Assembly (NCBI GenBank): GCA_965644295.1
Contig: CBFFRP010000089.1
Span: 62,001-126,000 of the forward strand
Source: Paraphysomonas bandaiensis
Lineage: Eukaryota; Protista; Chrysophyceae
Direction of reading: 5' to 3'
DNA: 64,000 nucleotides
Below are positions 5,298 to 47,924 of the stretch, piece after piece. The notes below the pieces were generated by a model, which was not told the DNA's origin, searched no databases, and saw only the letters and a program-made list of their open reading frames with translations. The stretch's first letter is position 1, and the number at the start of each line of letters is the position of its first letter. The translations under genes were made by a program, and so were the position numbers.

Positions 5298-5900
5298 ATG
5301 TCGCAGTATCTCTGGTATGGACTATTCTGTTATGGGTTGGTTGGATTGGTGTGTGTGTTCGTTGTGGAGTATAACAGTGATGCTGAAATGTGCATCACCG
5401 TATGTTCACGGTTGAGTATGAATATATTCAAACTTCGCTATTCAATTAACGTTCTATGCATGCACCGGCATATTTAATAACAAGCTTATATTATTTCTGG
5501 TATCCGTTTTATACACACTGTTAAGTTACCATAAATCGTAACTCATGTCGCCAACTTCACTAAATTTCAAATTTAATAAACTGGGCATTTGCATGTCACG
5601 GGATAAGTTGCAATATAACCTAGAGAACAGAGTATCACCCCTTGTTTCAAAAACATTGAGTGCGGGACAGTACACCCACCTCCTTAGGGTATATATTATT
5701 GGATCTATAGTCAAGTTGGTGTAATTTACTTGTCAATTGATGTAAAAACCTAGTAAAGTGGTTGGTGGCAGGGCCAGGTAAAAATATGTTGCAATATACA
5801 ATCAGTAATATTCTTACTACAATAAATATATAATAATATACACTGATATATATAGTTCATGCTTGTATGTCTTTAAAAATATATTTTATTAATCATAAAT

Positions 5901-6116
5901 CAGGGCGAAACTCACAAACAACGTTAAGAGCGGAAGTGGTCGCACCTTGGTGCTTACGGCGACGCACAAGCAGCTTCTGTAGCGTTAAATAGTAAGATAA
6001 TAGAATTTGTGCTGATTAGTTATGGGTAGCGGTCTATCTAGTATGTCTAGCATTCAACTAGCCACTATTTTGGTGCAGGTTTTTAACGCCTATTGCTAAA
6101 TAATAAGACTTTAATA
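5901..6116 (+). mobile_element. 5'-truncated non-LTR retrotransposon 3' end
   Basis: 14-bp TSD TATTAATCATAAAT (5887-5900, 6117-6130). Matches the 3' end of the 17206-17846 fragment, including AAACTCACAA.CAAC.TTAAGA.CGGAAGTGGT, and ends in the TAATAAGACTTT tail. Confidence 0.85.
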
Positions 6117-6253
6117 TATTAATCATAAATTACTCCTCATAATCACGTAACTCATCTGTTATTATTATATCGAACAATTCTGATAATTACCTTAACACTA
6201 TTCATGTCCGGTATTAGAATTCGTACTGTCTCTGTCAAGCTATATCTATAAGT

Positions 6254-6342
6254 GCCCTCAACAAAGTCGGACTCTCACCTTTTCGTGGTGTTCTGGGGGA
6301 TAAGTACCGGAGAGATTCTCTCTGGGAAACTAACGTGAGCCG
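6254..6342 (+). ncRNA. Putative HDV-like self-cleaving ribozyme at the 5' end of the retroelement
   Basis: P3 ACC/GGT around L3 TTTTCGT (6280-6286). P4 CCGGAGA/TCTCTGG. J4/2 C-TAA (C6330). P2 CTC.C/GTGAG. The 5' CCCTCA pairs with TGGGGG. Confidence 0.55.
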
Positions 6343-6738
6343 CAAACACAGTCAGCAGATATTCTTCTGCCCACTCATAGCCGAATGCTTGTGTGGTATA
6401 AGGGACACCAATAAGTGTCACTTGTGTAGACGTCTTTGGGCCCTGACGAATAAACAGGCATCCGGAAATGGGCCCACCTGAAGGGTAACCGGGGTATTGG
6501 GCTGCCTGCTGAAGTCAAGCATCCGGGATGTTCACCTTAAGAACTCAGAACGGAAGTGGTTGCACCTTGGTGCTTGCGGCGACGCACAAGCAGCTTTCGT
6601 AGCGCTAAATAGTAGGATAATAGAGTTTGTACTGATTAGTTACAGGTAGAGGTCTAACTAGTATGTCTAGCATTCATCTAGCTACTAAATCGGTGCAGGT
6701 TTTTAACGCCTATTGCTAAAAATAAAAGACTTTCAATA
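6255..6738 (+). mobile_element. Bipartite non-autonomous retroelement (SINE-like): structured 5' head plus LINE-derived 3' tail
   Basis: 13-bp TSD ATATCTATAAGTG (6242-6254, 6739-6751). Highly similar to 46376-46829, with a ~32-nt extra segment near 6395-6425. The last ~190 nt are shared with the LINE-like copies. Confidence 0.9.
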
Positions 6739-7914
6739 ATATCTATAAGTGGTTGGAATGGATCATCACGGACGACCTTCCTTTGTTGACAAATGTCTGG
6801 CCAGGTGAGAGCCAAGATTATTATGACACGCCTGCGACAAGGACCTCCACGATGCCTCGAACTTCTGCTGTTCCTTCGGTTCAACAAGCTCTTGTGGTCC
6901 GCGAAGACAATGCAACAGGTCATCGATGATGAGCAGTCCGGCCATGATGAGAATGAGGACGACAGTGATGAAGAGCTGAAATGCTTAGAGTACAAAAGTT
7001 TCTGCGTTGTTATTGGGTTTTCATCATCATCATGTATGTTGTAACCTCTACTAACTAGTTACTACCTATCGAGCTAAAATATAAGATGTTTTCTTCATCG
7101 CGCCCAAAATATAAAATATATATCAATATATTGCAATATCAACCCGAGATGGTTGGAGAATTTAGTAAATAGCGACTCATATTATTAAGTCCAGAGCTAC
7201 ATTACAAATTCTAGATACAACCGTTCTCATGTAATAATCAGACATTTCTATATATTATTGCTATATATATTTAATATTGGTCTTTAAAATATTATGATTT
7301 CTACTGGCACTATATTTCAATATATATATATTGTTATCGGGCCCTGGTTGGTGGAGTTCTGTCTATGATACTATATATCTCTTTTCTGTTCTCTAACTTT
7401 ACTATGACCTTAATCTATGTGGCGTTAGTTTGTAACCTGCTGTGTGACTGCAATGTTCTGTAATGCGTAGTTATATGCGAGTACAAGTTATGACTAGAGA
7501 CTTGTAATATATATATAACTAAAATTGACTAGTATGTATTTCCACCGAAAACAGTGTGACTAGGTTAAATAATATTTCCTCTTCTTAGTGCCTGTGCTTA
7601 AATAGATATATATAAAAGTGTAGTTATAAAATTTTCTTGTGGACTTGAGGAGGGAATTCGATCAGTACATGATTATTCGATCAGTGCCCCTATAAATATT
7701 TATTTATTATATATATTATTCCATAACAAATATTAGAAAATAAATTAATTCGAGAGTGTAATACGATGTAATATATATATATAATAAATATTGGTGCGCC
7801 ATATTAGCATATATGCATATATTGGATACTTATAATAGATAGCGGTGACACTTATAGGCAGTATATATTATCTATAGGTTGCAGGAACACTAAAATAGTA
7901 GGCTAACAAGTACT

Positions 7915-17205: not shown

Positions 17206-17846
17206 ATATATATTGAAAGTGTTATTATATAGCAGTAGGCGTTAAAAACCTGCACCAATGTAGTGGCTAGTTGAATGATAGACAGACTATTTAGACCTCT
17301 ATCCATAACTAATCAGCACAAACTCTATTATCCTACTATTTAGCGCTACAGAAGCTACTTGTGCATCGCCGCAAGCACCAAGGTGCAACCACTTCCGTTC
17401 TTAATGTTGATTGTGAGTTTTGCCATGATCGTGTGTCCCAGGACTCACTGGTGCGTGTTATCAGGGGGTCTTCCCTTGGGATCACAGGGCTTTGTGGTGG
17501 TATCGGGTTCTGTAGGAAGGTCCTGAGTGTACCGAGTGCTAGGTGTGTGGGCTGAGAGTTGGGTAGGGAGTTGAAATGTGAATGTGGCACTATCTCAGTG
17601 CACTGTTTAGGCCTCGAACATAGGTAGAGTTGCCGGAGACGGCGTCGTTGTCGAGGGACGGAGGGTTTTTTGCAGGACGGTGATATGTTCCTGGGGGTAT
17701 GATTGGTGGGTTTCGTGTGAGCGGTGGTCCAGTCTCGGGTCGTCTGCGGACTCCTAGTAATCGTAGCACCCTTGGGCTTTTCCATGACTGCCTACGTTTC
17801 TGATGCGGTCGCGGGAGTATCCGAGGGGGTCCGTATTGAGTATTAA
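17206..17846 (-). mobile_element. 5'-truncated non-LTR retrotransposon (LINE-like) fragment, ~640 bp
   Basis: The 3' ~200 nt match the shared tail. Upstream is a distinct GC-richer, Pro/Arg-rich decayed coding-like region ending ...KLTINIKNGSGCTLVLAA. Degenerate flanking repeat CTATGGAACAT / CTATTGGACAT. No RT motif is visible. Confidence 0.7.
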
Positions 17847-22480: not shown

Positions 22481-22527
22481 GCAGTATTGCTACGGCATGT
22501 AAAATGGGGAGGAGGTGAATGCCTCGC

Positions 22528-22651
22528 AGTAGTGAATGTCTGATTATTAGAAATGTAGCAAACGTTAGTTTCCCGAAGAAACATCTCCGGTACTTATCCC
22601 CCAGAACACCACGAAAAAGGTGCGAGTCCGACTTTGTTCTCTGATGAGGGC
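22528..22651 (-). mobile_element. 124-bp mini retroelement: ribozyme-like head fused directly to the extreme 3' tail
   Basis: 11-bp TSD GAATGCCTCGC (22517-22527, 22652-22662). Minus strand reads GCCCTCATCAGAGAACAAAGTCGGACTCGCACC...CTAACG then CTAATAATCAGACATTCACTACT. Confidence 0.85.
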
Positions 22652-23186
22652 GAATGCCTCGCTACGTTTTTATTTCTTTTCAATTAATTTCACTCAATAT
22701 TGACTTTTTCTTATTTTATTACATAGATCGTTGAAGAAAAGCTAAGTCGTCAGACTAGATAGATTAGTATTGTGTCCACAATGTTTTCATTTCGCATAAA
22801 GGTCGTCATCAACATAATCTTAGCTAATCCAACATTAAATAATGATAATTTGAGTACATTATTATGACTATTATAACTATATATATATGATAAAATTACT
22901 ATATGTATACGTTTGGATTTCTTTTTGTACGAGACTGTTAATAAACTCAGTCCCTAGTAGCTACACATATATCAGCTAAGATACATTCTGCTATCGTATC
23001 TACTTTACTTTTTCTTACTATTTTTGGACATCTGCTCCCCGGTTAATGGTTCTTTGAGGAGTAAGTTATTACATGTATACCCCTCTTTCACTTATGTACC
23101 ATGTTGGTAGTATTAATTCAGTGAAGTTGTTGTACTTGGTGTAAGTTTCTAAATGTTTTTTACTTATATTGTCGCTATTATTATGC

Positions 23187-23264
23187 GACTCACGTTAGTG
23201 TCCCGTAGAATTATCTCCGGTACTTCTCTTCCAGAACACCACGAAAAGGTGCGAGTCTGAGGGA
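23187..23264 (-). ncRNA. Stand-alone copy of the HDV-like head (78 nt)
   Basis: Minus strand: TCCCTCA GACTCGC ACC TTTTCGT GGT GTTCTGGAAGAG AA GTACCGGAGATAATTCTACGGGACA CTAA C GTGAGTC. P2 GACTCGC/GTGAGTC is 7 bp. No clear TSD. Confidence 0.55.
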
Positions 23265-34302: not shown

Positions 34303-34328
34303 GAAAAAATATTAAAAAGAGACAAAAA
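34303..34328 (-). terminator. Pol III oligo-T terminator of the 5S gene
   Basis: Minus strand TTTTT immediately after the 5S 3' end, with two further T-runs. Confidence 0.75.
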
Positions 34329-34446
34329 CGGACAGTACCCGGACTTCGCACGTGGTCACCCACCGTACTACTAACCGGGCCAGATGCAACTTAACTTCCG
34401 CGAGCGGAACGAGAGCGGGTGCGGTTTGCATTGTATGACCGTCCAT
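34328..34446 (-). rRNA. 5S ribosomal RNA gene (119 nt)
   Basis: Minus strand ATGGACGGTCATAC...CACCCGCTCTCGTTCCGCTCGCGGAAGTTAAG...GGCCCGGTTAGTAGTACGGTGGGTGACCACGTGCGAAGTCCGGGTACTGTCCGT. Terminal stem pairs, box A/C present, followed by T-runs. Confidence 0.96.
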
Positions 34447-46017: not shown

Positions 46018-46374
46018 TGAGTATCATAGCTACCTCACAAATGTTCTTCTGGTACTACTAGTGTTAGCCCATATGTTCACAACCAGACCTTGTTTCGTTC
46101 CATAGATATAGGGATTTAATAACTGATTGGGTTCATGTGGATAAATATTTTTTTCGTTGCATACATTATTTGCTGTCGCAATTAATTGACAATTTTGTAA
46201 TACTAAACTACTACGTACTTAAGTAGCTATACATTTGCTGCCAATATAGCTTGCTCAACTTTCATTTCATTCCAGTGACGACGATTCATGCGTGAACACA
46301 AGGAGTCATACTTCTGCGAAATCAGTCATAACAATCTAGAATCTAGCTCTACTGAATAATATTTCAACCTTATT

Positions 46375-46464
46375 GTCCCTCAACAAAGTCGGACTCGCAC
46401 CATTTCGTGGTGTTCTGGGTGATAAGTACCGGAGAGATTCTCCCTGGGAAACTAACGTGAGCCG
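46375..46464 (+). ncRNA. Putative HDV-like ribozyme head (copy with L3 and P1 substitutions)
   Basis: GTCCCTCA...CTCGC ACC ATTTCGT GGT GTTCTGGGTGAT AA G..P4..C(46452)TAA C GTGAG. Confidence 0.5.
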
Positions 46465-46829
46465 GAAACATAGTCAGCAGATATTCTTCTGCCCACTCAT
46501 TGCCGAATGCCTGTGTAGACGTCTTTGGGCCCTGACGAATAAACAGAGATCCGGGACAGCGCCCACCTGAAGGGTAACCGGGGAATTGGGCTGCCTGCTG
46601 AAGTCAAGCATCCGGGATGTTCACCTTCAGAACTCAGAGCGGAAGTGGTTGCACCTTGGTGCTTGCGGCGACGCACAAACAGCTTCCGTAGCGTTAAATA
46701 GTAGGATAAAAAGTGTGTACTGATTAGTTACAGGTAGAGGTCTAACTAGTTTGTCTAGCATTCATCTAGCTACTAAGTTGGTGCAGGTTTTTAACGCCTA
46801 TTGCTAATAATAAGACTTTCTATATATAT
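46376..46829 (+). mobile_element. Bipartite non-autonomous retroelement (second full copy)
   Basis: 10-bp TSD AACCTTATTG (46366-46375, 46830-46839). Same head and tail as 6255-6738. Ends TAATAAGACTTTC(TA)n. Confidence 0.92.
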
Positions 46830-47924
46830 AACCTTATTGGATGTGGCATTCAATTTCAAGCTGATAAGTCCAGTACAGTACGTGTTAAGACGTGCTCCTC
46901 AGTTATCACCAATCAAGCAATGCGATCTGTTGATTTCCAGAACTAGATCCTCGCTGTCATAATCATATTCGTTAAAATGTATTAATTTGATCCTTTTCCA
47001 TCCGAGAAAGTGAGACTTCGTTGCCACCTTGTATCTTCACGACTGTTTTTTAGAAAGCAGAGTTATGAATAATAGTAGCGTTGTCGCCCAGACGTTCGAC
47101 AACCAAGTGCATTGTGATGAGTACGCCGAACAATGTACGAAAGTCGTGGAGATCGAGGTAATGCTCACCGACACACATTAAAAGAAATTCAAGTCATATT
47201 ATAATTTCACCAACATGTCATGCTTCATATTACTTGGAAGTAGACAAATCATGTCAGAGCCAAACCCAATTGATTACAAAAAGCAAATAATAGCCAATCA
47301 TTGAAAGTGTAGAGCTCTGCCTGAAATTTTCATGAATGATTTCGGACAGCAGTACAGAGCTGAAATTCTGGCACATGTAGTCAATGACACTTTTTTCCAG
47401 TGGCATAGCGAATTGTATGTTCAGAATGAGCGCATTTAAGATTTAAACACAATGTAAGAGTCATATAGTAAGTTTGAACCAATAACTAGCTGTATATCGT
47501 TTGTACCGCTTATGATAATGAGTAATAATTATTATACGCACCCTAAATACTAAATATATCTTGCCATAGTCAAATTGATGGCTTTGGTGTTGCGACACAC
47601 ATATAGCTATGGTATAAATAAAAGTGTAAATTCCGTAATCTACCATGGTTAATTTCTTAGCAAGATATTGTATGTCATACAATTTTAAGACCAATTCATG
47701 TGTCGAAGTCAATCACCTGCGTACAATAGCGACCATCACATGTACACGCAGTCAAAATAAAATATAATTACAACGGCTATAGTATAAACTATCACTGCTC
47801 TCGGGAAAGCAGTGTGAATGCGCGCTACCCACACTTGAGAGTGTGATTGTTTGATCGTTCGGAAATTGCTACTTCATTTCTGTATACTTTCGTCATCACT
47901 ATTTACTAAGGCACAGTAAAAGTA

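Follow-up and report, generated by a model that had tools for sequence, protein, structure and literature searches.

The head (positions 6255-6341) of a short non-coding retroposon found in the window, the whole 64,000-nt stretch of chrysophyte DNA analysed here, is probably an HDV-like self-cleaving ribozyme, akin to those at the 5' ends of the trypanosomatid L1Tc/ingi elements. On this reading, which is drawn from sequence comparison, the RNA would be made in longer transcripts, cut 5' of its first base (C1, position 6255) and copied by a LINE reverse transcriptase. In R2, RTE-type and L1Tc/ingi retrotransposons, and in their short derivatives, the 5' end is known to be set by HDV-like ribozymes. 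The role known for them in non-LTR elements (R2 with its SIDEs, L1Tc/NARTc/SIDER) is, as judged from the sequences, probably found here in a stramenopile, together with a non-canonical P3/P1 junction and a partner LINE that has no head. In the literature searched, no report of such an HDV-like ribozyme in a stramenopile was found.

The following course of events is proposed. The non-coding element would be transcribed within longer host or neighbouring transcripts, since it is without a polymerase III-type promoter, and it may also possess an internal promoter of its own. The head would fold into a nested double pseudoknot, in which C76 (6330) of J4/2 is the predicted catalyst of the cleavage 5' of C1. 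The released RNA would always have C1 as its first base and would bear a 5'-OH. The reverse transcriptase of an 11-kb LINE would recognise the borrowed 3' UTR/tail and copy the RNA to its end at C1, so that new insertions would begin at C1 directly after the TSD.

If this is correct, the role of these ribozymes extends to a chrysophyte, in whose 62.5-Mb genome one such family takes up a noticeable share. The family would provide a natural test of how far the P3/P1 junction and the P1.1 of the HDV-like fold can vary, and an example of a ribozyme head that a short retroposon did not take from the 5' end which its tail-lending LINE has at present. Given how nearly identical the catalytic blocks are to those of Pr77, one may ask whether the combination of promoter and ribozyme arose before the kinetoplastids. 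About a thousand such heads in or near genes could also cut host read-through transcripts.

Copies of the head and their common first base

A Sec1-family ORF of the window shows 91% identity to a transcript labelled Paraphysomonas, which points to a heterotrophic chrysophyte, or a close relative of one, as the host. The window holds four copies of the head, and all of them start at the C of CCCTCA, at 6255 (+), 46377 (+), 22650 (-) and 23263 (-). The 21-nt core CACCTTTTCGTGGTGTTCTGG gave 4 matches in the window at up to 3 mismatches, while 0 were expected from shuffled sequences. The original prediction had placed the common start at (G/T)CCCTCA, adjoining the TSD in three of the copies. The single common first base was confirmed, but it is the C; the G or T lies outside the element and belongs to the flank, to the TSD or to one extra base. 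The direct contact with the TSD was seen in the copy at 6255, where the 13-bp TSD ATATCTATAAGTG (6242-6254 and 6739-6751) adjoins C1. In the other two copies one additional base intervenes, namely a T at 46376 in the copy at 46377 (TSD AACCTTATTG, 10 bp, 46366-46375 and 46830-46839) and a G at 22651 in the copy at 22650 (TSD GCGAGGCATTC, 11 bp, 22652-22662 and 22517-22527). No TSD of at least 8 bp was found for the copy at 23263. The features of the window are collected in Table 1.

Table 1. Positions of the retroposon copies, of the parts of the head and of the LINE-derived sequences in the window; base numbers of the head are counted from C1 = 6255.
Feature	Position	Strand	Basis or remark
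Flagged full copy, non-coding retroposon of about 484 nt	6255..6738	+	13-bp TSD; near-identical copies genome-wide
HDV-like ribozyme head (probable)	6255..6341	+	Fold mapping; covariance model R1, 120.4 bits; pair counts
P1, 5' strand, CCCUCA	6255..6260	+	Pairs with 6294-6299 (UGGGGG); predicted cleavage 5' of 6255
P2, 5' strand	6270..6276	+	Consensus GACUCGC; flagged copy has U at position 21, one pair broken
P3 (ACC/GGU) enclosing L3 (UUUUCGU)	6277..6289	+	Invariant in young copies
Spacer GUUC between P3' and P1' (G36-C39)	6290..6293	+	Absent from relatives
P1' (UGGGGG) and A46	6294..6300	+	A46 is the proposed single P1.1 partner of U28 (6282)
P4 hairpin	6307..6325	+	C53-G71; paired in both young subfamilies; two pairs changed on both sides in family M
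J4/2, GAAACUAAC	6326..6334	+	Candidate catalytic C76 = 6330
P2', GUGAGCC	6335..6341	+	Pairing with the P2 5' strand
3' module from the 3' UTR of the 11-kb APE+RT LINE (LINE F)	6547..6737	+	89% identity over 189 nt to the sequence just 3' of the LINE ORF in L065
Second full copy, about 87% identical to the flagged copy, several pairs broken	46377..46829	+	TSD
123-nt copy: head to AACG, then the last ~25 nt of the LINE tail	22528..22650	-	TSD
Head copy without J1/2 (positions 7-15), two G-to-A changes in P1'	23183..23263	-	Sequence; no TSD
5'-truncated LINE F copy, no head	5901..6117	+	TSD ATTAATCATAAAT at 5888-5900 and 6118-6130; matches the LINE 3' end

The 123-nt copy is without P2' and carries a 7-nt insertion directly 3' of CCCTCA. 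It was considered as a minimal unit that would argue against ends defined by a ribozyme, but this use of it was dropped: no second copy of the form was found in the genome, and a template jump or a deletion between two AACG motifs fits this single copy equally well, which makes it neutral.

In the genome as a whole the family has in the order of a thousand copies, all beginning at the C of CCCTCA. The first genome search returned 1842 candidates, and all 40 of those that were scored were 99-100% identical. When the covariance model was applied to 150 candidates, the scores lay between 110.8 and 121.6 bits and every match spanned model positions 1-91. The TSD adjoins C1 without an additional base at 23 of the 26 fetched loci that had a detectable TSD. 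This bears out a check set with the original prediction, that the 5' ends would be fixed genome-wide and not scattered. In one sequencing run, probably of DNA, 6255 is the exact point of divergence for 115 contigs; the runs searched consist of assembled contigs, and breaks at repeat edges occur in DNA and RNA alike. One contig of a polyA metatranscriptome spans the predicted cleavage site, an assembled contig being of a kind that cannot show RNA ends.

In the first sample, 30 of 42 heads were identical. Two abundant young subfamilies differ in P4 only, and each keeps a different but paired stem. The head was found on at least three bodies, of 484 nt, of 1.2 kb and others. The 1.2-kb non-coding element shares the head and the roughly 200 nt that follow it, and has a distinct 3' region with the same end motif of the AATAATCAGA type.

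Identical 1.2-kb elements bearing the head were also seen in clusters, in the same orientation, 1-7 kb apart and with flanking sequence in common (L014-L016, G000:C421:70112-73370; G000:C169:171629-184458; G000:C148:53162-54354). They resemble tandem or segmental arrays and could be source loci for read-through. Two independent insertions of the element into older heads were observed as well (L002:1480-1680 (-) with L002:300-420 (-), and L017:1480-1680 (-) with L017:1000-1130 (-)). In both, the 3' junction lies within L3 (TT^CGTGG and TT^CGTAG) and the TSDs are 15 and 11 bp long; L3 may be a preferred target, or may have been hit by chance given the copy number.

Fold of the head

The consensus of the head, taken from more than 150 copies, was CCCTCAACAAAG. 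The order P1-J1/2-P2-P3-L3-P3'-P1'-P1.1-P4-J4/2-P2' of the nested double pseudoknot could be traced at 6255-6341, with a 4-nt spacer between P3' and P1' in addition. The helices that had been listed in HDV order were present as described, with three corrections.

P1 is formed by C1-A6 with U40-G45. It consists of 6 bp including one U-G and is followed by an A7/C39 mismatch. In an unbiased helix search the best P1 begins at element base 1. A P1 of about 7 bp directly after P3', as is usual in HDV-like ribozymes, was not found here: P1 has 6 bp, and P1' begins 4 nt 3' of P3'. Counted after GGU, the offset of P1' is 0 in L1Tc and in the two metagenome families M and T described below, and 3-4 in this head. 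Judged against the sequences of L1Tc, M and T, the GUUC spacer is a real oddity of this head. In structural terms it may either loop out, or C8-G36 may close a bulged longer helix.

The ancestral P1 of 11-12 bp that was originally suggested had been pieced together from two different copies, and TCCCTCAGAAC occurs in no copy. GAAC lies within the 7-nt insertion private to the single-copy element at 22650, and the G that follows CCCTCA in the copy at 23263 is the first base of P2, moved beside P1 by the deletion of J1/2. An A42 variant, which makes a U4-A42 pair, was found in 14 decayed copies, and only one of these also has G7. A perfect 7-bp P1 (G7 and A42) was accordingly rejected as a subfamily or an ancestral state, being present in one decayed copy only.

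In the consensus, J1/2 comprises positions 7-15. P2 pairs C18-C22 with G81-G85 (CUCGC/GUGAG, contiguous), and G16-C87 is added beyond an A17/C86 mismatch. The copy at 23263 reads GACTCGC/GTGAGTC, that is, a full 7-bp P2 in its own sequence. P3 pairs A23-C25 with G33-U35, and both the 3-bp P3 and an L3 of 7-8 nt ending in C-G-Y, which are HDV-like features, are present. P1.1, which in HDV-like ribozymes consists of one or two pairs between L3 and the bases 3' of P1', is represented by the single pair U28-A46. P1' had been described as followed by AA; the sequence there is A-U-A-A. The U-A pair as such is real as a column pair, though a single one, and it does not define a new class, since the P1.1 of the L1Tc ribozyme (L1TcRz) is already a single base pair (PMC3185411). 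With the long P1 unsupported and a single-pair P1.1 known from L1TcRz, the proposal that the two features mark an undescribed structural subclass was abandoned.

In J4/2, C76-U77-A78-A79 (6330-6333) provides the candidate catalytic C followed by N-A-A. It does not stand directly before P2', as had been stated, because an additional C80 (6334) intervenes.

A pseudoknot-free alternative fold, in which the P2 5' strand pairs with L3 and the spacer, was calculated at -25 kcal/mol. Pseudoknot-free folding of the consensus head gave no significant z-score, by a method that cannot represent the proposed fold. Among the Rfam HDV-type models no match was obtained at E up to 10 in 6150-6800. At the gathering threshold, Rfam recognised no ribozyme family in the whole window and reported only a 5S rRNA gene elsewhere (34327-34446 (-), 100.7 bits).

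Relatives of the head

Within the genome, the covariation first suggested as a check was not seen among the copies, because they are too young. Metagenome contigs were scanned for the core plus AGTAC, and 14 loci were returned. These relatives were picked by the core motif, and the complementarity of P1, P2 and P4 lies outside the selection. Two of the matches (L080 and L086) look like chance, being GC-rich and without P1 or P2, and three (L078, L081 and L084) are doubtful; none of the five was used.

Family M (two loci) matches the head from P3 to J4/2. Its P1, CACCGGC/GUCGGUG, stands directly after P3', its P2 is GUCCG/CGGAC and its P4 CCUGGGA/UCCCAGG. The P2 columns 18/85 and 19/84 swap C-G for U-A between the present family and family M. 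At the P1.1 column pair 28/46, family M has U-A like the present head, and L1Tc has A-U. The similarity of the two family-M loci (L082:341-435 and L083:1663-1757) extends for hundreds of bases to either side of the ribozyme stretch, which is itself the best conserved part; this stretch has 2 differences, one of which converts a C-G pair to U-G. With similarity reaching so far, the ribozyme is not at a repeat edge there.

Family T (seven loci) has the P1 CCUCCUC/GAGGAGG, or CCCUCC/GGGGGG followed by A. In CCUCCUC/GAGGAGG all 7 pairs are Watson-Crick (shuffle p = 0.004-0.006), and the similarity between the copies starts at the first base of P1. Two members of family T have the P2 helices GGUGUCUCC/GGAGAUACC (9 bp) and GUGCUGC/GCAGCAC (7 bp), which are unrelated in sequence; they stand at equal distance from P1', and each has C-N-A-A before it. 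One member of family T has an AP-endonuclease ORF downstream. The ribozymes of families M and T gave no Rfam match at E up to 1. A search of the present genome for other ribozyme families with the same core found point-mutated heads only.

In the model-guided alignment 93.6% of the cells were paired; sliding the partners by 1-3 columns lowered this to 41-57%. Changes on both sides were counted in 5 pairs, and the observed value was reached by none of 500 shuffles; these pair counts come from an alignment fitted to the model and from few independent lineages. Support for the helices from compensatory changes is found between families only, and at this level the covariation expected of the helices was obtained for P1, P2 and P4, which are kept by compensatory changes in the metagenome relatives.

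A second, canonical-looking HDV-like ribozyme candidate was noticed on another metagenome contig (L089:570-641 (-)), where the Rfam model HDV-F-prausnitzii gave 30.7 bits, under its gathering score of 44. Most of it is situated directly upstream of the ORF of a Mutator-like transposase (783-2759, minus), whose 5' edge it overlaps by a few bases.

The closest known counterpart of the head is L1TcRz, the 77-nt Pr77 of the Trypanosoma cruzi element L1Tc, whose activity as an HDV-like ribozyme, with cleavage 5' of C1, has been demonstrated by experiment (PMC3185411, PMC4035085); its sequence was taken as the oligo R77 (PMC1874656). The alignment of the head with Pr77 showed the CCCT start, CACCT-NNN-CGTGGTG, AGTAC before P4 and GAA-R-CTAA before P2' as common blocks. 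The trypanosomatid elements (L1Tc, NARTc, ingi/RIME, SIDER) resemble the present one in that their first ~80 nt are an HDV-like ribozyme, as is probable here, the element starts CCCT with C at +1, the P3-L3-P3' core is the same except for three L3 bases, AGUAC precedes P4, GAA-R-CUAA precedes P2', P1.1 is a single pair, and non-coding derivatives also carry the head. The differences are that their hosts are kinetoplastids while the present host is a stramenopile (chrysophyte), that L3 is UCAACGU and P1.1 A-U in place of UUUUCGU and U-A, and that the 7-bp P1 directly follows P3', whereas here P1 has 6 bp and the 4-nt spacer intervenes. P4 is longer here, and the LINE that lends the 3' tail is without the head.

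The HDV, CPEB3 and F. prausnitzii ribozymes (RF00094, RF00622, RF02682) have in common with the head the nested double pseudoknot, the 3-bp P3, an L3 ending in C-G-U and, in J4/2, N-A-A after the catalytic C, which in the head is a candidate. Both the L1Tc oligo and the Rfam HDV-F-prausnitzii consensus (aCC UCUaCGU GGu) have this P3 and the L3-terminal CGU, and both have C-U-A-A before P2' (GCUAAG in L1Tc, GGCUAAG in the consensus). The head differs from the three in that P1.1 is not C-G, in the spacer 3' of P3' and in matching no Rfam model.

As regards the elements themselves, the R2 ribozyme and the R2 SIDEs of insects (short internally deleted elements; PMC3414825, PMC3774820) show that a 5' HDV-like ribozyme together with a LINE 3' end suffices for processing from a co-transcript and for mobilisation of a non-autonomous element. 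R2 and its SIDEs are site-specific in 28S rDNA (PMC3414825, PMC3774820), whereas the insertions here are dispersed and have TSDs of 10-15 bp; SIDEs come from internal deletion of a ribozyme-bearing parent, whereas the parent LINE here has no head. A small self-cleaving RNA is also built into the non-autonomous Sm-alpha hammerhead elements, into twister variants in Schistosoma non-LTR elements (PMC8501958) and into retrozymes (PMC7761336), but these ribozymes are of another class and, for some, the position and the mode of replication are different.

The partner LINE and the function of the head

The retroposon shares its 3' end with a partner LINE, has TSDs and occurs in dispersed copies, as SINEs do. 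The partner, LINE F, is 11 kb long and has AP-endonuclease and reverse-transcriptase domains; the end motif common to it and to the retroposon is AATAATCAGAC. In addition to the 5'-truncated copy in Table 1, 17212-17401 is also a 5'-truncated LINE F copy without the head. The start point is one and the same for more than a dozen identical LINE F copies and for a 70%-diverged subfamily; the sequence there is unrelated, and neither the head nor an Rfam match was found at this mapped 5' end. Two other LINE families had no head where their 5' ends were expected, these ends being guessed and not mapped. The hallmark of Pr77, a 5' signature of about 77 nt common to the autonomous LINE and its derivatives, is therefore not seen in LINE F, the donor of the tail, which begins with unrelated sequence.

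The original proposal, that an HDV-like ribozyme sets the 5' end of short non-autonomous retroposons, appears to be the best reading of these data, on account of the order of the fold, L3, J4/2, the fact that P1 and the element begin at the same base, the L1Tc blocks and the compensatory changes. Several departures from the canonical fold count against it: the 6-bp P1 with its U-G, the A/C mismatch, the 4-nt spacer seen in no relative, the extra base in J4/2 and the mismatch in P2. The lack of an Rfam match and of covariation within the genome, the pseudoknot-free alternative fold, the polyA contig across the cleavage site, the headless partner LINE and the existence of inactive L1Tc-type ribozymes (PMC4035085) were counted on the same side. 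These departures would be understood if the head descended from an HDV-like ribozyme that no longer cleaves because of its 6-bp P1 and 4-nt spacer, and were kept for another need or by hitch-hiking, with the 5' ends set otherwise. The P3'/P1' junction does depart from that of every relative, and some L1Tc-type ribozymes with an adequate fold are inactive in vitro (PMC4035085). Such a loss of activity is improbable, however, in a young and extremely successful family with exact 5' ends, in which both master subfamilies retain a paired P4 and no other mechanism that would set the ends is evident. The exact ends could also come from transcription, if the head were only an internal polymerase II promoter with initiation fixed at C1 by a downstream element as in Pr77, the ribozyme-like fold being incidental or vestigial. 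In Pr77, transcription starts at +1 and CGTG at +25 to +28 is the essential downstream promoter element (PMC4748587). In the present head CGTG stands at +30 to +33, inside the block conserved with Pr77, and a promoter of this kind would explain how about a thousand copies are expressed without an upstream promoter of their own. As the sole function of the head it is nevertheless doubtful, for it leaves unexplained the complementary, co-varying P1, P2 and P4 of the relatives and the C-N-A-A before P2'; moreover, almost no copies have an extra 5' base, while capped templates often leave an extra G, as in L1. Since both functions coexist in L1Tc, a promoter is more likely an addition to the ribozyme than an alternative to it.

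That the head is a structured 5' module with some other job (binding of the LINE protein, RNA stability or export), its HDV likeness being convergent, would agree with its presence on elements with different bodies and with the lack of an Rfam match. We regard this as very improbable, because a likeness that extends block by block to a proven ribozyme, and to the catalytic positions of the F. prausnitzii consensus (C-G-U of L3, C-U-A-A of J4/2), is hard to obtain by chance. The SINE-like build, with a unique head, a body and a LINE-derived tail, and the exact 5' end would also suit an ordinary SINE head with a polymerase III promoter. A polymerase III origin of the head is unlikely, since there is no tRNA, 5S, 7SL or snRNA similarity at E up to 10 (Rfam, 6150-6800) and since TTTT at positions 26-29 and several more T runs in the 1.2-kb variant would terminate polymerase III; as an account of the family the SINE reading is hardly tenable. 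A bolder form of the ribozyme reading is possible, and we offer it tentatively: the head may be a free-standing, portable module of ribozyme and promoter, joined to the LINE tail independently of the LINE's own 5' end and serving in place of the polymerase III promoter of a SINE. The likeness to Pr77 would in that case reflect an ancient module across eukaryotes and not convergence, and the spacer would be a working architecture outside the current HDV-like descriptors.

Two further observations concern the LINEs. In LINE F (L064, G000:C433:106500-116499, minus; related copies for example at G000:C132:273948-282703) a SET domain, which is histone-methyltransferase-like, stands just before the AP endonuclease and the reverse transcriptase in one long ORF (Pfam SET, 2.3e-08). 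Three LINE families (3' ends of L066 and L067; window 6555-6590) have in common a 36-nt stem-loop-like block (GGTTGCACC..GGTGCT.GC) directly 3' of the stop codon and, at the very end, the AATAATCAGA motif. From their sequence, the block and the motif are likely a recognition signal for LINE reverse transcriptases.
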